A stretch of 64,000 nucleotides of DNA from the sequence record PP456877.1, one strand, 5' to 3'. Shown piece after piece: positions 5,811 to 57,209 of this stretch; within the stretch, counting starts at the first letter, position 1, and every line of letters begins with the position of its first letter. A program made the position numbers and the translations under genes. The notes below the pieces were generated by a model. That model searched no databases and was not told where the DNA came from. It saw only the letters and a list, made by a program, of their open reading frames with translations.

Positions 5811-6644
5811 CTAATATTTTCTTCGTTCGATGCCCTGTAGTTTCGCGAATGTGTCGATCTTGTACTGGTCAACAAAATGCCAGGCTAGATCGGTAAGTGC
5901 ATAGATGTCCGGACGTTCGTATTTACCGAAGTCTGGTTTCTCACGACTCAATTGAAAATCGATGAACTGATCTAATATAGGGCAACGATCTATCAGATCC
6001 TGTTCAGTAGCCCCAACCTTATCATTAACCAGTTCTTGGATACGTTTATAAAGGATAGGATCTGTTAGAAGAGGCAGTAGATCATGGAATACCATCGGTG
6101 GATGTTCCAGACTTTCACGGACCCAAATTGCAGCCAACAGAGGACGAAGAGAATAGAAGTATTTCTTCATCCGGACTTTCTCATCTGACAACCAACGCAT
6201 TTTGGTTTGTTTGGCCATCGAGATATAATGCATGTAACTCGATTCAGGGATGAAGTGCTTTAGCGCAGCATCACGGATTAACTTGTAGTCCCGATCAACC
6301 TTACGGTAAACGATTGGGGAGTTTAGCCATTCCAAGAGAGTGGGGTTAGACTTGTAAGCAAGCTGAAGAGTCTTAGTGATACTCCAACCAGCTAGGTCTA
6401 GTTCTTTAGACACCATCTCTTCAATAGTATCACGTGCTTCATTATCCACACGAACATAATGACTCGGATGGTTAACGTAAATGAAACGAACATCATAGTC
6501 ACTATTGGTTGAAGCAAAGCCCCATCCACGACTACCGGACTCACAAGCATAAATAATCTTTACACCATATTTCTTTTCGATACGGTCTAGTTCTACATTA
6601 ATCGTTACCCGCATCTCATCGTTAACTGGATGACGTTGATCCAT
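5811..6644 (-). CDS. Pol-beta superfamily nucleotidyltransferase (Nuc-transf/RlaP, T4 NrdC.11-like)
   Basis: YACESGSRGWGFASTNSDYDVRFIY, DLAGW, KSNPTLLEWL, KKYFYSLRPLLA. Confidence 0.9.
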   Translation of the reverse strand: MDQRHPVNDEMRVTINVELDRIEKKYGVKIIYACESGSRGWGFASTNSDYDVRFIYVNHPSHYVRVDNEARDTIEEMVSKELDLAGWSITKTLQLAYKSNPTLLEWLNSPIVYRKVDRDYKLIRDAALKHFIPESSYMHYISMAKQTKMRWLSDEKVRMKKYFYSLRPLLAAIWVRESLEHPPMVFHDLLPLLTDPILYKRIQELVNDKVGATEQDLIDRCPILDQFIDFQLSREKPDFGKYERPDIYALTDLAWHFVDQYKIDTFAKLQGIERRKY

Positions 6645-7051
6645 TATCCACCAACCTTTTCAAATTTGAGTTTTTCTTCTTTACCTGTGTCCAGATACAT
6701 GAACATCGATGTACCCAGCAAGTTGTATACAAACCAACCTTTGCTCACAAGTTCCTCTTCGAATTTCAGTGGTGCCGATAGTTCGCATATAGCCTCGTAC
6801 GGGATGACAATAGGCTCTTTCTCGGGCTTAGTAAGAATCAGTGCATGATCTGCAAGCTTCAACCATTGCTTGCGACTACTGATACCAAGACCAATACTAA
6901 ACTCTTCACCTGGATCTTTTCCGTTAAAAAGGCTACAGCGAGTTTCTTTGGTTACTCTATTACCGGCGATACCGATCGTGAGAGGATCAGGAAAGACCCC
7001 CATCAGTTCAATAACCATTTCAAGTTGACGCTTCAGTTCAGTGTTGTTCAT
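6644..7051 (-). CDS. hypothetical protein
   Basis: 135 aa ORF, stop overlaps the next start. Confidence 0.8.
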   Translation of the reverse strand: MNNTELKRQLEMVIELMGVFPDPLTIGIAGNRVTKETRCSLFNGKDPGEEFSIGLGISSRKQWLKLADHALILTKPEKEPIVIPYEAICELSAPLKFEEELVSKGWFVYNLLGTSMFMYLDTGKEEKLKFEKVGG

Positions 7052-9277: not shown

Positions 9278-9985
9278 TTACAGACCAATACGAGTCAAAA
9301 TTTCAGCCCAACCTTTCTCTTTAGCATATCGCAATAGGCTATTTTCAATATGGGTTTCACTATAGACAATAGGTTCATGGCCACCTTGCACATGATACAT
9401 TGTTAATGGTTCCACCACATGTTGACTAGACCAAGCATCGTATAAACGATCATTGATTTTAATCACCACATATACCATCAATTTATCGTCGATGTCAAGA
9501 TCAATACCTGCTACAAATGCATTAACATTGGAACGCACTTGGTCAGCAGTTAGTTGCACTTGCAACCCGCCATGTACTTCAAATTCGATATTACAGATAT
9601 TCTTATTTAACCAAGTATACACTGCCTGATTAGCATATGTCTCAATTGGATCACTACTACGTAAATCTAATAATGGTCCATATGTTTCTAATGATGAGAC
9701 ACTGGTATCAACTAGGTCATTCAATGAGTATTCGGTACTAGAACAACTATCTAAAACACAGATAGTGTTATCCTCGATATGGATAGGTAATACCTTGAAT
9801 ACCACATTAGCAACATTAGGTAATGACGTATCTGGTTCAGAACTATTGAATGGAGTATAAAATAATCGATCAGCCACTTCAGTATCAATAGTTGATACAT
9901 CCATTGGAATGAATCCATTAAGATCTTGTTTGATTACGTCATTGTGTCCAATTCCAGAAAAAGATAAATACATTTTCTCAGACAT
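9278..9985 (-). CDS. hypothetical protein
   Basis: 235 aa ORF. Confidence 0.8.
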   Translation of the reverse strand: MSEKMYLSFSGIGHNDVIKQDLNGFIPMDVSTIDTEVADRLFYTPFNSSEPDTSLPNVANVVFKVLPIHIEDNTICVLDSCSSTEYSLNDLVDTSVSSLETYGPLLDLRSSDPIETYANQAVYTWLNKNICNIEFEVHGGLQVQLTADQVRSNVNAFVAGIDLDIDDKLMVYVVIKINDRLYDAWSSQHVVEPLTMYHVQGGHEPIVYSETHIENSLLRYAKEKGWAEILTRIGL

Positions 9986-9993
9986 ATCCGTAC

Positions 9994-10251
9994 CTATTTA
10001 TTTACACAGATTAGAGTATGTTCTACTTTACTAGTACTAGAAGAAAAATAACGTAATAGAACACCATCACTGATTTTTACAGTCTCTACATTATTACGAA
10101 TAGCACTTGCTTTAGCTAGTTTTTGAATGCGCTCAATCGCGCTAAAACAAGTAGCCATGTCAGAGAACTCAGCGGTTGACTGCGATGCACCATTGGCTTG
10201 ATAACCAGCGATACTGATACTACTAAAAAGAATTGCTAAAGTTGCATTCAT
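9994..10251 (-). CDS. small exported protein
   Basis: N-terminal hydrophobic signal-like segment; two Cys in the mature part. Confidence 0.7.
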   Translation of the reverse strand: MNATLAILFSSISIAGYQANGASQSTAEFSDMATCFSAIERIQKLAKASAIRNNVETVKISDGVLLRYFSSSTSKVEHTLICVNK

Positions 10252-11156
10252 TTCTTACCACCTTTAATAACAGTGAGTTTTGGTGTACCGGTAGGACGAG
10301 AAGGTTTATTAATAATAACCTGCGAATTGGAAGAATTATTGAAATCCTCAACCATCTTATTTACATCATTGTCAAATGAATTAGATGTATTATCACCCGA
10401 GTCCACAGTTGATTCACTAACCACATTTGAAATAGGGTAACTGAGGAGTTCCATCATAAGTACATTGATGTTATCCTGATAGTTTTCATTACGTGTACAA
10501 TTAATAACCCGCTCACACCAATCCATAATTAATTCTGGTGCATTCTGTTTAATTACAGTTACCGCTACTCTAATATGTGCATCTAATTCTGGATTACTAA
10601 ATTCAGTTACTCTGTTAATGGCGCTTTCAATCATCTGATCATGCTCATTCTCAGATGTATTCCTTACAACTAACTTACCATTAGTGGTATCGGCTTTATT
10701 TTTAAAATTAACCTCAGTGACATTACCTACGGTAGTTAATACTGGGTTTTTGTCAACTACATTATTAACAGTTCCTTCTAATGTTGCACGAATAGTATCT
10801 GCATTGAGATATCTATCTACTAGTGGCATTTCAAAGAATGCGTTAGAATTATCATCAATAGGTGTAACTACACCCAATACTGCATAAAGAGGAAGTTTAA
10901 TACTGACCCCAACTCCATTTACTGTTACATTGAAAGAGATATATTCGTCACTGATATAAAAATTCTTTGCACAGCGTGGATGGATATTGAAAGTGATAGT
11001 GTGATCTTCTTTCGCATGCTTTAGAGCTACCTCAGATAAATCAGGTACTAATTGAGTATGTGCTACAATTAGAATATCTCTGAAGTTATTCTCAAGAAAC
11101 CAATCATAGGTAGCTCGAAGAATATGGCCAGTGAGTAATGATTTTACCTTTAGCAT
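10248..11156 (-). CDS. sspB: SspB-like ClpXP protease adaptor
   Basis: ILRATYDWFLEN, ITFNIHPRCAKNF, ISFNVTVNG, LPLYAVLGV match E. coli SspB YLLRAFYEWLLDN, IVLNIAPRAVGNL, VRFNARFGG, VPLAAVLAI; C-terminal PKLTVIK resembles PALRVVK. Confidence 0.8.
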   Translation of the reverse strand: MLKVKSLLTGHILRATYDWFLENNFRDILIVAHTQLVPDLSEVALKHAKEDHTITFNIHPRCAKNFYISDEYISFNVTVNGVGVSIKLPLYAVLGVVTPIDDNSNAFFEMPLVDRYLNADTIRATLEGTVNNVVDKNPVLTTVGNVTEVNFKNKADTTNGKLVVRNTSENEHDQMIESAINRVTEFSNPELDAHIRVAVTVIKQNAPELIMDWCERVINCTRNENYQDNINVLMMELLSYPISNVVSESTVDSGDNTSNSFDNDVNKMVEDFNNSSNSQVIINKPSRPTGTPKLTVIKGGKK

Positions 11157-11178
11157 ATTTGTATTACCTTTAAATAAA

Positions 11179-11646
11179 TTATAGGAAGATATCTTCTACT
11201 GAGGGCACTATATTCTTTTCTTTTACAAGTTCAGTAGATTTGGTATAATGTGCATTAAATAGTTTCTTTAAATCTGCTTTTTCATATTTTACAGTATCTG
11301 CTAATTTCCAAATAGTAAGACCTAGATGAATACTAACTGAATTAACATGTTTTACGCATAGATCAATTAATTTGTTAAACTCTTCTAATTCATTTTTAAT
11401 CAACGTTGCATCTAAAGCTTGGTGCAAACGATTAGATAATTTAACTTTATCTTTGTCAATTGTAAAGTTATTTTCAATATCCTTAGCACTCATCGGTGGT
11501 TCAACTTTATACCACACATTGGTTAGTTTACCGTCCACACGCGTCGTGATGGGATGTTTATAATCAGTCCAACTTCTATGTAGATTATGTTTATCATCAA
11601 GAACATCTACAGTAACTTTCTCATTACCTGTAAAGAATGGATACAT
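11179..11646 (-). CDS. hypothetical protein
   Basis: 155 aa ORF. Confidence 0.8.
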   Translation of the reverse strand: MYPFFTGNEKVTVDVLDDKHNLHRSWTDYKHPITTRVDGKLTNVWYKVEPPMSAKDIENNFTIDKDKVKLSNRLHQALDATLIKNELEEFNKLIDLCVKHVNSVSIHLGLTIWKLADTVKYEKADLKKLFNAHYTKSTELVKEKNIVPSVEDIFL

Positions 11647-11819
11647 TAGGTTGCCTTTATTTTATCAATGAGTAATTTTAATAGTTCATCATTAGTTAAA
11701 TTGTCTTTATTTTTAATAATGTCTTTTAGTTTAAACATATTGAAAGTATACCACAACCACTTATGAATTATATAACAAATCACTATAACTAATAATAGTA
11801 GTGAATGTAATGCTAGCAT
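11646..11819 (-). CDS. 57 aa membrane protein (not in ORF track)
   Basis: MLALHSLLLLVIVICYIIHKWLW...; TAATG overlap with the next gene; first ORF after promoter 11856. Confidence 0.7.
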   Translation of the reverse strand: MLALHSLLLLVIVICYIIHKWLWYTFNMFKLKDIIKNKDNLTNDELLKLLIDKIKAT

Positions 11820-11855
11820 TATAACTACCTATTTTGATATGACTTGACCAAATAT

Positions 11856-11863
11856 GTAATATA
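11856..11863 (-). promoter_or_regulatory. early promoter core TATATTAC
   Basis: exact motif within cassette. Confidence 0.75.
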
Positions 11864-11890
11864 GATTTCAAAAAAAATTTAATGCAATAA

Positions 11891-11912
11891 AGGAGAGCTA
11901 AATAGCTCTCCT
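11891..11912 (-). terminator. intrinsic terminator
   Basis: aggagagcta-aa-tagctctcct. Confidence 0.8.
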
Positions 11913-11920
11913 ATTTATGC

Positions 11921-12211
11921 TTATTTATTTTTCTTTCTTGACTTATCTTTAATAACTAAGTCTAATGCTTCAAACATTTTAACAGCAGTTAAATGGTCGA
12001 TAGAGTATGCCTTTTTACGTAAACGTCCAATAGCTACTGTATACTGGTATTCAGATAAACCATCACTCATATTGTCAATAATTGATAGTGCTTCTTTATA
12101 AAGCCTGTTACACTTTATCGTGTGTTTGATGGCATAATAACCCCAGTTAATTAAAGCCATCATTATAATCAGAAACAAAATACCTATAATTACTGTCATG
12201 ATATCATTCAT
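11921..12211 (-). CDS. single-pass membrane protein (paralog A)
   Basis: N-terminal TM VIIGILFLIIMMALINW. Confidence 0.8.
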   Translation of the reverse strand: MNDIMTVIIGILFLIIMMALINWGYYAIKHTIKCNRLYKEALSIIDNMSDGLSEYQYTVAIGRLRKKAYSIDHLTAVKMFEALDLVIKDKSRKKNK

Positions 12212-12521
12212 TTGCTGTTTCCCTATTATTACATTTTAATATAATCAATGAGTTGATATCGTAAATAAAAGATGTAAAAATATGTTGATTTGTTATTTTA
12301 GATGATTCTTTATCTATAATGTCTTGGACAGCATTTTGATAGAAAAAATAACTTATGCCATTGGGCATTTTATCTAATACATATCTAACCTTATAAACAC
12401 CCATCCAGTGAATATAATGATTTTTTATATTAATAATGAAAGTTACACATGTTGATATAGCCGTTAGTGTTATCATTGATATAACAAATACTTTATACAT
12501 TTGCAACCCACAGATTCTCAT
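12204..12521 (-). CDS. single-pass membrane protein (paralog B)
   Basis: TM VFVISMITLTAISTCVTFII; shares YK..(I/V)(I/L)D.M..G(L/I)S...Y..A with paralog A. Confidence 0.75.
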   Translation of the reverse strand: MRICGLQMYKVFVISMITLTAISTCVTFIINIKNHYIHWMGVYKVRYVLDKMPNGISYFFYQNAVQDIIDKESSKITNQHIFTSFIYDINSLIILKCNNRETANE

Positions 12522-12534
12522 CTAGATGAAATAA

Positions 12535-12554
12535 ACCAGCCCCGAAGGGCTGGT
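12535..12554 (-). terminator. intrinsic terminator, cUUCGg loop
   Basis: accagccc-cgaa-gggctggt. Confidence 0.85.
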
Positions 12555-12556
12555 AT

Positions 12557-12925
12557 TTATTTTACAACCACAGCTTTACCGTAGTTGTTATCCATACAGG
12601 TTTTAAATGATGTAACGTATGCATCACGTGGGCTTTGTCTACGTGAATACACAACGTGCACCTCTTTAATTGCTGCTGGGAGAACATTGTAAAGAACGTT
12701 ATCTTTGTTCTTCACGCCGTACCCTTTTAGGGATCGTAGGTTTTCTTCCCATTGTAAAATGGGTGTTTTACGCTGACGTGCTTCTGCTGTGGCATGTGCT
12801 ATAAGTGCAACACCATTACAGTAATTCTCGTCAACTACCAACGATGCAGCTAGTGGGTTTGATACGTATAACAACGTACTTAATACGGCCACTAACTTCA
12901 TTACGTGTGTTAAACATTGCATCAC
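12557..12925 (-). CDS. exported protein with signal peptide
   Basis: MKLVAVLSTLLYVSNPLAA signal-like segment; Cys pair. Confidence 0.75.
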   Translation of the reverse strand: MMQCLTHVMKLVAVLSTLLYVSNPLAASLVVDENYCNGVALIAHATAEARQRKTPILQWEENLRSLKGYGVKNKDNVLYNVLPAAIKEVHVVYSRRQSPRDAYVTSFKTCMDNNYGKAVVVK

Positions 12926-20547: not shown

Positions 20548-21132
20548 TCATCCCCAGAATCGGGCGATGAAGTGAACACACTCCATCTTTTTAGTTTCTT
20601 CCAGGAACTTGAAATAACCATCATCCACACCATTGCTCAAAAATAGCTGGCGATAGGTTTTTTCCGAAATGACTTCACCATTAACATCTTGATCGAACAT
20701 CGTTGGCTTCTGATCATAATCGAAGTTCCAGAGGTCTTCCATATTGAAGATCATTGTAAGTGGGTACCAACCATCTTCACTATAATAGGCGTACGGTGTT
20801 AGATTGTCCTGTTTGGAATTGACAATTTGTGAAAGGCGACCTTCAAAGTTGTTCCATACTGGATGCGAGTCATCACTGACGAGTGTACCAAATCCACAGC
20901 CTTTAAGAGTCGGTCGACAGAATCGGTTGGTATACTCATTATTATCGGTTAACCAATCCCAAAGATAATAGCAACGGCTAAAGTTAAGAGCCTCGCATGT
21001 ATGCATGTCAATGAATTTAAGTACACGTGCACCATCTGAAGAACGTGTGGAACGTTTGGTAACTACAGGGAAAACATCAATACCCATTTTAATCATCCAT
21101 TTAACAGAATTTTTCTTGACCAGGGATTTCAC
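20548..21132 (-). CDS. conserved phage hypothetical protein (MGxD...FDYDQ...TYR type)
   Basis: MGIDV, SRCYYLWDWL, LWNFDYDQ, TYRQLFL; likely starts at MKMGID. Confidence 0.75.
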   Translation of the reverse strand: MKSLVKKNSVKWMIKMGIDVFPVVTKRSTRSSDGARVLKFIDMHTCEALNFSRCYYLWDWLTDNNEYTNRFCRPTLKGCGFGTLVSDDSHPVWNNFEGRLSQIVNSKQDNLTPYAYYSEDGWYPLTMIFNMEDLWNFDYDQKPTMFDQDVNGEVISEKTYRQLFLSNGVDDGYFKFLEETKKMECVHFIARFWG

Positions 21133-39956: not shown

Positions 39957-40361
39957 TTAGCTATTGACATCTTCAAAGAAGCTGGCTACACTTTCAACAA
40001 CGTCAGTCATAGCGCTACTCTTATATTTGGTATCTACAACTGTTACAAGAGCACCACTGCGATCAATGATACCAGAAACAGTTGCACCGCCTGCATTATA
40101 AGAATAACCAAGTTCGGCAATGCTTTCATTTTCTTTCATGTACGGTGCGGCTTTTTCAGCAAATACATAACTTACAGCCGCTGCTAGTTGACCTGCACCT
40201 TCATGTACCTGCGCATACTGCTCGGCAGTAACGCCTGCTGGTTGAAGAACAACTTCTTCAAATAGACCATCAGGGATCTCAAATACCCCGGCATCAGACA
40301 TGCTTACTTTTTCATTTAGGTTGTGGGTTTCGATAAACTTCTTGGTGGTTTCGATGGACAT
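39957..40361 (-). CDS. acidic Ala-rich hypothetical protein
   Basis: 134 aa with own terminator. Confidence 0.8.
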   Translation of the reverse strand: MSIETTKKFIETHNLNEKVSMSDAGVFEIPDGLFEEVVLQPAGVTAEQYAQVHEGAGQLAAAVSYVFAEKAAPYMKENESIAELGYSYNAGGATVSGIIDRSGALVTVVDTKYKSSAMTDVVESVASFFEDVNS

Positions 40362-42362: not shown

Positions 42363-51123
<8,761 letters not shown>

Positions 51124-51153
51124 ATTAAACTCCATTGACGATTAGTAAAGTAT

Positions 51154-51198: not shown

Positions 51199-52851
51199 AT
51201 GAAGAAGGCATTAGTTCCTTTTAATATTTCTTTACTTATTCCTACTAAAGAACAATTAAAGTTCTTAGGTCAAGTAAAGAGTCATGAGATATTTGAAGGT
51301 TTAGGTGGTAACTTTCATGAAGATGGTTTGTTCTCTGTTTCCATTTTTGGAAGAGTTGGATCAACTGATCGTGAGAGTTTATTTGGATATATTCATTTAG
51401 GTTTAGAACTTATCCATCCAGCTGTATATCGAAACTTAATTAAATTAAAAGCTTTCTATGAAGAAATTATTCTTGGTAAGGCATTTGCAGTATTTGACGA
51501 ATCTATTAAAGATTTTATCCGCGCCGATGAACTAACTGGTAAAACTGGTTATACATTCTTTTTTGATAACTGGAAACGAATTGACTTTGGGTCCACTAAG
51601 TCAGGGGTTCGGCTATCAAGGTTACAATTAATCGAAAAATATAAAGATAACTGTATTTTTAAAGACATGCTTGTAACACCAGCCGCTTATCGTGATGCAG
51701 AGATTGATGAGAATAATCGTGTTGAGATGGATGAGATCAATGAACACTATAGGTATCTATTAAATCAGTCGTTTGGTGTACCTGATAGCTTTGGACCAAA
51801 TGATGACTTGAGTATCTATGATCGCAAACGAGTAGCAATGCAAAACACCGTATTAGCTATTTATGAACATTATGAACGACTGCTATCCGGTAAACGTGGA
51901 TACATTCAATCTAAATGGGCATCCCGTCGTATTGCCAATGGTACACGTAACGTCATTAGTTCGCTAGATACTAATGCTGCTGATCTTGATTCACCTAATC
52001 GACCAACATTCAAAGATGCCGTAGTTGGCTTACATCAAGCAGCTCGTTCAGTTGCACCGCGTACAATCTTTGCACTAAGGCAAGGTGTAGTTGGTGAAGT
52101 GTTTGATACAGTTACTAACACTGTACAGCTCATCAATAAGAAAACACTACGTTTAGAATGGGTTGATATCTCTAACGAAGATATGGATCTATGGGGAACT
52201 CCTGAAGGGCAAGAACAAATCATCAATGAGTTAGATGTCATTGAAAAACGTTCACGTGCAATTGAAATTGCTGATCATTATCTAGCCCTTATTTACGTTG
52301 ATGATAAACAGAATTTTAAAATATTCCGCAACATCGATGAGTTACCTACTAATCTAAATAAGAAATTTGTTAGACCTATTACTTATGCCGAATTAGTTTA
52401 CCTTAGTGGATTAAGTATGTGGCGAACAAACTCAGCGTTTGTTACACGATATCCTGTAGAAAACTACAATAGCTCTATCCCCTGTAAGATGTATGTTAAA
52501 ACAACCGTAGTGGGTGAATTACGTTATCCGTTAAATGATCAATGGGAACGTGATGATACGTTGGAACCAGCCTTAGAATTCCCTGTGTTTGAATTAAATA
52601 AACCAGCCCAGTGGCATGACTCAGTATCCATCTCTCCTTCTATTCTCGCGCCATTGGGGGCGGATTTCGACGGGGACACTGTATCATTTAACGCAGTTTA
52701 TTCAGAGGAAGCTATCGCTGAAACAGATGCTTTCTTTAAGAAACGTATTGCATATATACATGCCGATGGTCGACTGGCATTTAGTGTTGGTATCCATACA
52801 CTCAATTTAACTCTTCGGTACATGACTGGGGAACCCAAACAAAGGGATTAA
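51199..52851 (+). CDS. virion RNA polymerase beta-prime-like subunit with catalytic motif (gp180-like)
   Basis: GLFSVSIFG, GKRG, LGADFDGDT. Confidence 0.93.
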   Translation: MKKALVPFNISLLIPTKEQLKFLGQVKSHEIFEGLGGNFHEDGLFSVSIFGRVGSTDRESLFGYIHLGLELIHPAVYRNLIKLKAFYEEIILGKAFAVFDESIKDFIRADELTGKTGYTFFFDNWKRIDFGSTKSGVRLSRLQLIEKYKDNCIFKDMLVTPAAYRDAEIDENNRVEMDEINEHYRYLLNQSFGVPDSFGPNDDLSIYDRKRVAMQNTVLAIYEHYERLLSGKRGYIQSKWASRRIANGTRNVISSLDTNAADLDSPNRPTFKDAVVGLHQAARSVAPRTIFALRQGVVGEVFDTVTNTVQLINKKTLRLEWVDISNEDMDLWGTPEGQEQIINELDVIEKRSRAIEIADHYLALIYVDDKQNFKIFRNIDELPTNLNKKFVRPITYAELVYLSGLSMWRTNSAFVTRYPVENYNSSIPCKMYVKTTVVGELRYPLNDQWERDDTLEPALEFPVFELNKPAQWHDSVSISPSILAPLGADFDGDTVSFNAVYSEEAIAETDAFFKKRIAYIHADGRLAFSVGIHTLNLTLRYMTGEPKQRD

Positions 52852-55800: not shown

Positions 55801-57209
55801 AACAAGAAGCGATGACTTATCGTGGAGATGGTGGACGCGGTCCAACTTCAATGGTTGCACGTACACGTATTTACGGTGAAGCGGATGTTGGTGTGGTTAG
55901 TGAATCAACTGTGGACTCAGGTGACGTTGGTGTTATTGCTTACTTAGTACCTGATGCTAACTTTGTAAACATGCGTGGTGTTACGCGTATGTTTGATCCA
56001 AAGACAGATGGGCCAGCTAGACTACTCTCAACTAGTGCACTGCTTGGTGTTGCAACCGAACATGATGACCCTAAGCGAATTAACTTTATCTCAATTCAGC
56101 AGCAGCAAGGTATTTATGCTGATGGGTATACAGTTACACCAGTTCGTACAGGCTATGAACAAATCATAGCCCAAAGGACTAGTTCTATCTTTGCTGTAGC
56201 AGCAGAACAAGATGGTGAGGTTGTAGCTATTGATGAATATGGTATCCAAGTTAAATATGCCGATGGTAATGTATTTGGATATCAATTAGGTACAGTTCAT
56301 GGCACAGCAGCTGGTGTTAACTATCCACACATTCTTGTTACCTCATTAAAGAAAGGTGATAAGTTTAAACGTGGAGATACTATCACATATAACAAACGTT
56401 ATTTCTCTGAAGATAGGTATACGCCTGGGCAAGTATTATGGAAAGCCGGTTGTATGGCTGTTGTAGCATTTGATGATAACCTTGACACTTTAGAAGACGG
56501 TTCAGTTATTTCTGAAGACCTAGCTAAAAGGTTAAATACTCAAACAACTGCAATCAAGAATATCGATGTTAGGTTTGATCAGACTATTCGAGATATGGTG
56601 AAAGTTGGGGATCATGTCGACTTAAATTCAATTCTATGTATAATTGAAGATCCTGAAACAGCTGCTCACTCACTATATGACGAGGCATCTATTGAGACAT
56701 TACGCAAACTATCAGCATATTCGCCACGTGCTAAGCTCGTAGGTACAGTATCAAAGATTGAATGCTTCTATCATGGTGAAATAGACGATATGACACCAAG
56801 TTTACAAGCATTAGCTAATACGTCAGATAAACAACGCGCTGAACGAGCTAAATCATTGAAAGAACCTACTTTCACTGGACAAGTAGATGCTAACTATCGA
56901 GTGAAAGGACGAGCCTTAGAATATGACCACATGATTATTCGAGTGTATATCGATCATGATATCCCATGTGGTGTTGGAGATAAAGGCGTAGTAGCTAACC
57001 AGATGAAAACGGTATTCTCCCGTGTAATGACTGGACGTAATGAAACTGAAGATGGCCGTAATATTGATCTACTATTCGGTAATACATCGGTAGAAGAACG
57101 AATGGTTCTATCTCCTAAAATCATTGCTACAACAACTGGTATCTTGTGGGCAGCTGGAAAACATCTTGTAGCTGTATATAGAGGAAACACTAATGCAAAA
57201 GCTAAGTAA
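52854..57209 (+). CDS. virion RNA polymerase beta-like subunit (gp178-like)
   Basis: 1451 aa; FMSNG, TVDSGDVG, QQQQ, VRTGYE, LEDG, GDKG motifs. Confidence 0.93.
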   Translation: MRLNITQFLKNYSVREYAKLQSPKLHALNKLDLPFESIYQFFDGNNAVMGPSQTDPLFSKHQGKVYIEHVTDMLTFEGNPRRTSNIPATMIQEFRRQNRFFKPLRSDTGFKLSNQNILVMNYNLINPQWNYMASYKATWFRWSNDMRTFWSGVAAACERFPGWNQFIDVHLPELVPPPSSFNKLRGGLTQDLANQFNTPDILNIFDLVRWVSDDRESSFMNVIDAKYYGNINLLFRVQSSFFVINLGMLDQWRRDPEIKDDKGYDTQQIARRLISLVSAMVEYNQGNTSLIKEDTPIFNEDIIVDEETPVSYEEGEAEEVEDVESNNVEEEVTEVDVIDDVQFDPTNLTNLIDIGAIEVTYTPPPESDLEVTKLIIEKDPLESSPSRQIKEEKELIVTDVPEDELFINTEVDEEDKLIDAIRAKAYDMYRVNMISANTFEQAQEDSIMYRRLPDPFTDPNDESVEPMTIAEAMEYHPDDLKIPEDTTFEDKPTIVDKSMLGSKLKAIQRKYNKVLLKKDILNSVLSVQKQGVSVTNYKIETVRDSGNHYQIHKVTLKPIRGRSSQVMFRIPVIDNDGRFMSNGVTYRQRLQRADIPIRKVNPRKVALTSYYNKTFVTRSERAENNFDNWLIRAITNRALDGSDMSVHSVTYAELDQSNYVLPRVYTTLGTAFKGFHNHRNVFYFNFKDRNEFFAKQGLHIEDYETDDLIMVGFNGTDAILLDKNSIFYMKTGNELEPIGTITDILGLDLTKAPLEAILMSIGGKELPLGFILAYHHGLNNLLKKLNVNYQRHQRGTRIVVNSTDYTLAFADEILVFDRADYKAMLVLSGLKRYHKSLRRYSVYDFNKRDVYFRVLEEAGLSNRFTRDIDTLFSAWVDPITEGLLKEMGEPTTFEGLLYRSVELLTNDWSPAEVDGAYMRYRGYERMAGAIFNELNRAVRVFNMRNGGSVQTVELDPHVIWRKIVQDPTVATIEDSNPIANIREQEAMTYRGDGGRGPTSMVARTRIYGEADVGVVSESTVDSGDVGVIAYLVPDANFVNMRGVTRMFDPKTDGPARLLSTSALLGVATEHDDPKRINFISIQQQQGIYADGYTVTPVRTGYEQIIAQRTSSIFAVAAEQDGEVVAIDEYGIQVKYADGNVFGYQLGTVHGTAAGVNYPHILVTSLKKGDKFKRGDTITYNKRYFSEDRYTPGQVLWKAGCMAVVAFDDNLDTLEDGSVISEDLAKRLNTQTTAIKNIDVRFDQTIRDMVKVGDHVDLNSILCIIEDPETAAHSLYDEASIETLRKLSAYSPRAKLVGTVSKIECFYHGEIDDMTPSLQALANTSDKQRAERAKSLKEPTFTGQVDANYRVKGRALEYDHMIIRVYIDHDIPCGVGDKGVVANQMKTVFSRVMTGRNETEDGRNIDLLFGNTSVEERMVLSPKIIATTTGILWAAGKHLVAVYRGNTNAKAK

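Follow-up and report, generated by a model that had tools for sequence, protein, structure and literature searches.

The 64-kb window analysed here, the whole stretch of 64,000 nucleotides from sequence record PP456877.1 (GC content 35.9%), contains a gp180-like gene for a virion RNA polymerase (vRNAP) subunit, the catalytic motif of which is encoded by a short patch of codons ending largely in G or C and coincides with the insertion point of an intron in related phages. All 47 megablast hits to the region were to Pseudomonas phiKZ-like phages, with 100% DNA identity to several Phikzvirus genomes; judged by these matches, the source of the window is itself a phiKZ-like Pseudomonas phage. The gp180-like gene, identical at the DNA level to Phikzvirus records annotated RNA polymerase beta subunit, carries the Mg-binding DFDGD motif close to its C-terminus. 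The features central to the analysis are:

51199–52851, plus strand: gp180-like vRNAP subunit, N-terminal part of beta-prime; an uninterrupted open reading frame (ORF) of 550 codons, 550 amino acids
52854–57209, plus strand: gp178-like vRNAP beta subunit gene, 1451 amino acids; its ATG lies 2 bases past the gp180-like stop codon
52645–52677, plus strand: patch rich in G or C at third codon positions (GC3), the resident 'W' haplotype of the proposed homing site; 11 codons, LAPLGADFDGD, codons 483–493 of ORF 51199–52851
52665–52666, plus strand: intron insertion point, unoccupied in the source phage; between GAT (Asp) and TTC (Phe), within the patch
52660–52665, plus strand: GCGGAT, which in intron-bearing relatives is the 5'-exon strand of the P1 helix predicted by RNAfold; no role in the intron-less allele
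52666–52674, plus strand: first three codons past the insertion point, whose wobble bases +3, +6 and +9 are a hotspot of variation beside introns and form the shortest co-conversion tract seen

The GC3-rich patch and the intron insertion point

Read in frame, the patch is CTC GCG CCA TTG GGG GCG GAT TTC GAC GGG GAC, with G or C at 23 of 33 bases and at 9 of 11 third positions, in a gene with an overall GC3 of 0.26. No other 11-codon window of the gene has nine such wobbles, the gene maximum, and among the 17,683 eleven-codon windows in the 69 long ORFs of the 64-kb window (GC3 0.256) just two reach this value, the second of which holds three Met or Trp codons, without synonymous choice. Given the amino acids LAPLGADFDGD and the codon usage of the 64-kb window, 2.2 G/C-ending codons are expected and the probability of nine or more is 1.7e-5; GGG makes up 8.7% of Gly codons, GCG 8% of Ala codons, and CTC and TTG 5% and 7.5% of Leu codons, respectively. 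The 15 codons on either flank have 6/15 and 3/15 G/C wobbles. The chance expectation is ∼0.3 such windows per 64 kb, and the composition of the patch alone is about what chance could give in a scan of 64 kb. Other stretches with 8–9 of 11 codons ending in G or C lie on the minus strand, at 20722–20754, 5829–5885, 6689–6829 and 40317–40361.

The gp180-like gene carries an insertion in 12 of the 47 Phikzvirus records and is intron-less in the remaining 35; the source phage, too, has the intron-less allele. In every case the upstream exon ends ...GCGGAT and the coding sequence resumes TTY GAY GG, the exons being otherwise collinear, and BLAST alignments of the query 52606–52725 split at base 61. 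Exon bases upstream and downstream of the insertion point are numbered here −n and +n, so that the patch, with 21 nt upstream and 12 nt downstream, runs from −21 to +12. Joining the exons of the intron-bearing relatives restores the reading frame of the source phage and encodes the same protein. The insertion is 1443 nt long and includes a 357-codon gp179 ORF (357 amino acids) in phiKZ, LC, Wadjak1, Wadjak2, PizzaParty, T2P, U1B, U5 and phi9_PA9, and also in the contig L036; in OMKO1 and fMGyn-Pae01 it is 481 nt long (L003/L004, 2561–3041), with the HNH ORF deleted. A preliminary description, made from the letters of the window, had pointed to the GC-shifted codons of LGADFDGD, to a continuous gene separated by 2 bases from the beta subunit gene, and to an HNH gene, gp179, between gp180 and gp178 of phiKZ, and had proposed the motif as a homing site. 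All of these points were borne out: the composition is as given above, PHIKZ179 lies between PHIKZ180 and PHIKZ178 in the reference gene order, and the HNH-bearing group I intron maps between 52665 and 52666, inside the patch. An Rfam search over the whole 64-kb window returned zero RNA families, hence zero intron matches.

The assignment to group I comes from Rfam RF00028, which the insertions match at 88–92 bits against a gathering score of 50 (88 bits for the 481-nt copy). The insertion follows a U and ends in G (...GAU/UAAUUG...AUAACG/UUC; slashes mark the junctions), and RNAfold predicted, for phiKZ and OMKO1, a P1 helix in which exon bases −6 to −1 together with intron bases +1 and +2 pair with intron nucleotides 7–15. 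The six exon bases, GCGGAT, were invariant across all Phikzvirus alleles read. A caveat to the assignment is that position 9 of the HNH-bearing copies is A, giving a U–A pair at the splice site and not the canonical U·G. The 481-nt intron of OMKO1 and fMGyn-Pae01 has G at position 9, with the canonical U·G splice-site pair and a P1 of 10 bp.

The gp179 ORF matches Pfam HNH_3 (E 7e-9), and the closest solved structure is that of I-HmuI (1U3E, E 5.5e-8), the homology being limited to the catalytic region, residues 121–229. It is 31% identical to PhiPA3 gp210 (E 1e-28) and 30% identical to gp56. An intron nuclease was the role predicted for gp179 when the phiKZ genome was first published (cited in PMC10914365); our literature search found no paper mapping its insertion point, assaying gp179 or describing an intron-plus/minus polymorphism. 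The HNH ORFs of phiKZ and Wadjak1 differ at 21 nucleotides yet at only 4 amino acids, from which it would follow that purifying selection keeps the nuclease and therefore that usable targets exist; the comparison thus implies targets for gp179 where the only empty sites known are of the G/C ('W') type.

In three further phages, Goslar of E. coli, RTH11 of Xanthomonas and Yong XC31 of Vibrio, a group I intron sits at this same GAT/TTY phosphodiester. The Goslar intron encodes a gp179-like ORF and the RTH11 intron is without an ORF. The EL-like Pseudomonas phage GXNNA8 and Photobacterium phage PDCC-1 also have an interruption close to this position, but the motif there differs and no Rfam match reached the gathering score; these two were left unclassified. 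A full-length match to the C-terminal part of the protein is missing in 53 of the 296 phage records with a homologue.

A practical consequence concerns the annotation of phiKZ itself. PHIKZ180 (L005, NC_004629; 588–2060) is annotated only to residue 490, because the intron opens with an in-frame TAA at which the annotated 490-amino-acid protein stops. The 183-nt second exon (FDGD... to stop; L005 3501–3683, window 52666–52851) is unannotated in phiKZ, T2P, LC, Wadjak and OMKO1, and the deposited phiKZ gp180 protein therefore lacks the FDGD half of the active-site motif. Two partial members (P0013 and P0014) of the 90% gp180 protein cluster are labelled Klebsiella pneumoniae; they come from contigs of 432 and 1180 nt and are probably phage reads within a bacterial assembly.

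Allele distribution and apparent mobility of the gp179 intron

Over 52606–52725, 34 of the 35 intron-less GenBank records were identical, the exception being KEN51, which has TTT at +3; 10 further contigs encoding the same protein also carry the patch. The joined exons of the HNH-bearing phages phiKZ, LC and Wadjak1 show 0 differences from it over the 33 bases. A or T variants at one to four wobble positions were found in seven HNH-bearing records or contigs (T2P, U1B, U5, phi9_PA9, PizzaParty and L036 are those listed), in both records with the HNH-deleted intron and in intron-less KEN51. Codons shared regardless of HNH status, the pattern that the preliminary description had named as fatal to its proposal of recoding, are therefore found in phiKZ, LC and Wadjak1, whereas the seven HNH-bearing, the two HNH-deleted and the KEN51 alleles vary. 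Exon 2 begins as follows:

TTC GAC GGG: source phage, phiKZ, LC, Wadjak1
TTT GAC GGA: T2P
TTT GAT GGA: PizzaParty
TTT GAT GGG: contig L036
TTT GAC GGG: OMKO1 and intron-less KEN51

Over the whole patch, the variant codons are GCA at −16 and TTT..GGA in the T2P group, and CTA, TTA, GGT and TTT in OMKO1. KEN51 (L015, position 1663, window 52668) is intron-less yet has TTT at +3, a state otherwise seen beside introns, which could be a mark left by homing that was aborted or reversed, or else a simple mutation. A metagenome collection, scanned for the empty site with any combination of wobble bases, gave 0 matches, taken to mean that it contains no Phikzvirus.

Near-identical introns were found on discordant backgrounds. 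The introns of T2P and PizzaParty differ at 2 of 1443 nt and their first exons at 32 of 1467 nt; for phiKZ and LC the corresponding figures are 2 of 1443 and 63 of 1467. Between PA7, which is intron-less, and PizzaParty, which has the intron, there is 1 difference in 1467 nt upstream, and the 4 differences downstream comprise 52668, 52671 and 52674 (+3, +6 and +9) plus one distant site; LC and intron-less KEN51 have 0 upstream differences. Intron-plus siblings of PA7 and of KEN51/SRR36553059 thus exist on near-identical, patch-carrying backgrounds, and the sibling pairs point to a conversion tract of <16 nt on the 5' side and 9–117 nt on the 3' side. Sibling pairs of this kind, taken with the near-identical introns on discordant backgrounds, indicate that such empty sites appear to have been invaded. 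Read in the direction of gain, the differences at +3, +6 and +9 appear to be a signature of homing with co-conversion; on these alignments, two intron lineages would recently have entered, or left, backgrounds whose empty site is that of the source phage.

A longer replaced tract is seen beside the HNH-deleted intron:

52231–52668, plus strand: replaced tract of OMKO1 and fMGyn-Pae01, 15% divergent there and ending at the insertion point; the source phage carries the resident version

The tract contains 66 differences against a sparse background elsewhere. Only OMKO1 and fMGyn-Pae01 match it at 100%; phiKZ, which is mosaic here, reaches 90.8%, and the remaining 43 records ∼85.5%. The pattern would fit the classic picture of co-conversion. 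The directions of the differences are unbiased (23:26). Within the patch itself 4 of 33 bases differ from OMKO1, equal to the tract average of 15%, and differences from the T2P-, PizzaParty- and OMKO1-type flanks are no denser than in the surrounding imported tract. The flanking single-nucleotide differences at 52164, 52189 and 52792 were considered as intron-linked markers and rejected: the linkage was apparent with seven sequences, but when all records were included many intron-less phages carried them and PizzaParty did not.

Insertion at the exact phosphodiester, group I features, an endonuclease of a proven homing family and a population signature of mobility were all found at this site. 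We consider it probable, if well short of certain, that the patch represents the empty homing site for the gp179 intron of Phikzvirus, in a resident and apparently invadable 'W' form that has not been recoded, and that its G/C set is probably linked to the intron. By analogy with characterized homing systems, upon co-infection by an intron-bearing phage the HNH enzyme would nick the continuous ...GCGGAT/TTCGAC... sequence near the insertion point, repair would then copy the intron from the intron-bearing genome, and a few flanking exon bases, mainly on the 3' side, would be copied along with it.

Several observations weigh against this interpretation. Homing does not itself explain the cause of the GC shift. 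A general rise in GC3 at intron sites, and with it simple GC-biased repair, was rejected, the flanks of phiKZ gp55/56, gp71/72 and the gp178 D1072 site being ordinary; no GC-rich donor with the patch bases was found among phage records outside Phikzvirus, nor in an IMG/VR search. All 35 intron-less records are G/C variants and the A/T variants stand almost only beside introns, as a resistance model predicts, although import of donor flanks with the intron predicts this equally. The sibling pairs could alternatively have arisen from loss of the intron by conversion from an intron-less phage. The literature searched holds no cleavage, homing or splicing experiment on gp179, and a survey of the phiKZ transcriptome did not detect splicing of the gp179 intron (PMC10914365). 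The U–A in place of U·G at the splice site may bear on this reported lack of detectable splicing.

Origin of the G/C wobbles

In six intron-less outgroup genes local GC3 equalled the gene average, without excess, and from this comparison the G/C wobble set appears specific to Phikzvirus. The preliminary description had allowed that the patch was imported by recombination. Part of this stands, in that its composition departs from the GC3 of the gene and it spans the insertion point; the part that does not is the donor, for which no matching sequence was found. The exon flanks of Goslar, RTH11 and Yong XC31 differ from the patch, so none of them matches as donor, and the sole IMG/VR 20-mer match, GGGGCGGATTTCGACGGGGA, came from UViG_3300028454_001165 (L031 10677–10696), an unrelated virus of 54% GC that has this motif, encoding ...LSGADFDGDTVMV...; this match was judged coincidental, because these are ordinary codons in a GC-rich genome. 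The P1 helix was rejected as a cause: it draws on −6 to −1 only and is shorter with GGG than with GGT at −7. The uniform G/C to A/T direction of the variants was likewise discounted as a sign of directed change, because any transition at a G or C gives A or T, and polarization of the changes by outgroups failed on the divergence of silent sites. We nevertheless favour an intron-linked cause over chance, because the patch straddles an independently mapped insertion point; by chance, such a point would fall within either of the two top-ranking GC3 windows among the 17,683 with a probability of ∼1e-3. The candidates are intron-linked gene conversion, a footprint of earlier occupancy, nuclease-related selection, weak RNA pairing and chance.

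One of these candidates involves the paralogous motif in gp55 of the non-virion RNA polymerase (nvRNAP), in which introns sit at two points (L019, phiKZ 38000–72000, 9924–12762; PA7 L041 and OMKO1 L042, ∼2030–2370). The gp56 HNH intron, at KAPN/ADFDGD, is present in phiKZ and in 40 of the 47 records, including the lineage of the source phage, while PA7 and OMKO1 have a different group I intron, after ADFDGD/. The remaining five records, in which the alignment to the phiKZ junction breaks off early, probably have the ADFDGD/ intron too. At the OMKO1 gp55 locus there is a second Rfam intron match further upstream, at 1608–1909. The motif of gp55 shows no GC3 excess, and its codons compare with those of gp180 as follows:

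phiKZ gp55 exon 2: GCT GAT TTT GAC GGC GAT
PA7/OMKO1 gp55 allele: GCA GAT TTC GAC GGA GAT
gp180 of the source phage: GCG GAT TTC GAC GGG GAC

The last 70 nt of the gp56 intron (L019 ∼12470–12540) and of the phiKZ-type gp179 intron (L005 3431–3500) are identical except for the final few bases, which points to an exchange of sequence between these two introns within one genome. The tail of the Wadjak1 gp179 intron has a different hairpin with compensating changes.

The proposal of the preliminary description, that the intron-less allele was synonymously shifted from A/T to G/C and so escapes gp179 and persists as immune, draws on real regularities. The 35 intron-less records and the 10 further contigs are all of the G/C form (one with T at +3), every allele with A/T at −19, −16, −10, −7, +6 or +9 has the intron, and only 12 of 47 records are invaded despite a common host. 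It nevertheless has to contend with HNH-bearing introns in phiKZ, LC and Wadjak1 that have exactly these flanks, so that the patch does not differ from cognate alleles, and with the intron-plus and intron-minus siblings that share a background; the A/T direction of the variants is near-automatic when 9 of 11 wobbles are G/C, and the OMKO1 tract is neither biased in direction nor less divergent than the patch. Recoding is therefore not supported, and we regard it as quite unlikely. A somewhat better case, though still an unlikely one, can be made for discrimination, in which the G/C wobbles keep the vRNAP ADFDGD distinct from the gp55 homing sites or from rival gp179 targets and thereby spare it ectopic or heterologous cutting; after an intron has split the site the constraint would no longer hold, leaving +3, +6 and +9 to drift to A/T. 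A precedent is the way in which the intron nucleases of SPO1 and SP82 tell self from non-self, reportedly described by Goodrich-Blair and Shub in 1996 (cited in PMC12908238). The Ala codon ends differently in each of the three motif alleles above, as does the Gly codon, the gp56 intron resides in the source lineage and most others, the shared 70-nt tail indicates that the two loci exchange sequence, and, KEN51 excepted, +3/+6/+9 variation occurs only beside introns. All of this comes from a handful of alleles compared by sequence; the upstream half, CTC GCG CCA TTG GGG, has no counterpart in gp55, and phiKZ, LC and Wadjak1 bear the intron and retain G/C at +3, +6 and +9. More broadly, we would tentatively entertain, at low probability, the ADFDGD wobbles as a recognition code in a contest of intron nucleases, distinct from nvRNAP sites or rival gp179 targets and lapsing after intron insertion, or, in a related reading, as the footprint of an earlier occupancy kept after loss; a constraint that lapses on insertion would explain why A/T at +3, +6 and +9 is found almost only beside introns. 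If this were true, synonymous sites of an essential catalytic motif would be a record of nuclease conflict.

Two further accounts differ in whether the intron matters at all. The wobbles could have been selected in an intron-bearing ancestor for pairing between exon −21 to −3 and the intron, and be a relic after precise intron loss. Exon −21 to −3 (window 52645–52663; L005 2037–2055) is complementary to the hairpin CUGCACGUAAUGGUGCGGG (L005 3450–3470), 31–51 nt before the 3' splice site, with 12 + 4 bp formed by −21 to −10 and −6 to −3 at −27.4 kcal/mol; natural changes at −16, −10 and −7 retain or improve the pairing, and a search confined to the last 70 nt gives z = −3.5 relative to shuffled exon. 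That search region was picked after the fact, however, and over the non-coding tail as a whole a pairing as good arises in 2.3% of shuffles and in 8% of random synonymous recodings. The intron segment folds into its own hairpin, GGG at −7 acts against P1 as noted, and the pairing, marginal in phiKZ, is absent in the Yong XC31, RTH11, Goslar, phiKZ gp56 and phiKZ gp72 introns, so that it was rejected as a conserved feature; we think this origin very improbable. The alternative in which the intron plays no part, either a chance cluster or codons chosen so that the catalytic loop is translated accurately or slowly, is doubtful, yet deserves more credit than RNA pairing. The expected number of such windows is compatible with it, and no promoter, terminator or repeat was found at the patch, nor significant mRNA structure, a local hairpin having been rejected at z = 0.05. 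GAC and TTC are codons favoured by the GC-rich host, but GGG, GCG, CTC and TTG are not host-preferred, the overlap with the insertion point has the low chance probability given above, and neither outgroup homologues nor the gp55 motif show the excess. Set against these alternatives, an empty homing site with a probably intron-linked G/C set remains the reading that we prefer.

Relation to known systems and neighbouring features

The closest experimental counterpart is PhiPA3 gp210, which nicks an intron-less RNA polymerase gene, phiKZ gp178, at D1072 (Birkholz et al., 2024, PMC11620839). Both systems consist of a group I intron with an HNH enzyme in a vRNAP gene of a nucleus-forming Pseudomonas jumbo phage, placed at conserved acidic-residue codons, and in both the target is the intron-less homologue in a co-infecting phage, for gp179 by analogy. 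They differ in site, gp180 AD/FDGD for gp179 and gp178 D1072 for gp210, and in scale, gp210 acting between genera whereas the gp179 intron, with an enzyme predicted from sequence, is polymorphic within one genus. The D1072 codon of the gp178-like gene in the window is GAC (56067–56069), the wild-type target of gp210, which escape mutants alter (PMC11620839); unlike the gp179 site, the flanks of this codon show no GC3 anomaly (3–5 of 11).

I-HmuI and I-HmuII, encoded by group I introns of the DNA polymerase genes in the Bacillus phages SPO1 and SP82, are HNH enzymes that nick, and markers flanking their introns undergo gene conversion; nicking by gp179 is predicted from this likeness, its homology covering residues 121–229 only and not the full I-HmuI. 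Recognition by these enzymes reportedly lies mainly in the 3' exon, and the 3'-biased tract at +3, +6 and +9 in Phikzvirus fits this. The PA7/PizzaParty differences and the OMKO1 tract also resemble the co-conversion of T4 td/I-TevI and angiosperm mitochondrial cox1, in which short stretches of flanking exon travel with the intron. In td and cox1, however, the footprint matches the donor, whereas here the patch of odd composition is the resident haplotype and no donor was found. The nearest relatives within the same genomes are the phiKZ nvRNAP introns of gp56 and gp72, paralogous introns with HNH genes and related 3' ends, the gp56 intron occupying in gp55 the same catalytic motif as the gp179 intron does in gp180. 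Their exon flanks, unlike those of gp179, are not GC3-rich, and the gp56 intron is near fixation where the gp179 intron is in a minority.

The feature of the source phage is an empty homing site, ordinary for its known class, with an additional oddity of composition. When jumbo phages co-infect, a mobile intron aimed at an RNA polymerase gene can serve as a weapon of one against the other (PMC11620839), and the locus offers a natural within-genus version of this conflict at a single insertion point in the catalytic DFDGD motif, in a population with at least four intron sublineages that have intact nuclease genes, one with the nuclease deleted, and 35 empty sites. Sibling pairs that differ by little beyond the intron and three wobble bases make homing, co-conversion length and nuclease specificity testable in existing isolates.

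One further gene adjoins the locus:

44413–51135, minus strand: gp181-like giant tail or lysin gene, 2240 amino acids; left neighbour of the gp180-like gene, with the same arrangement in phiKZ

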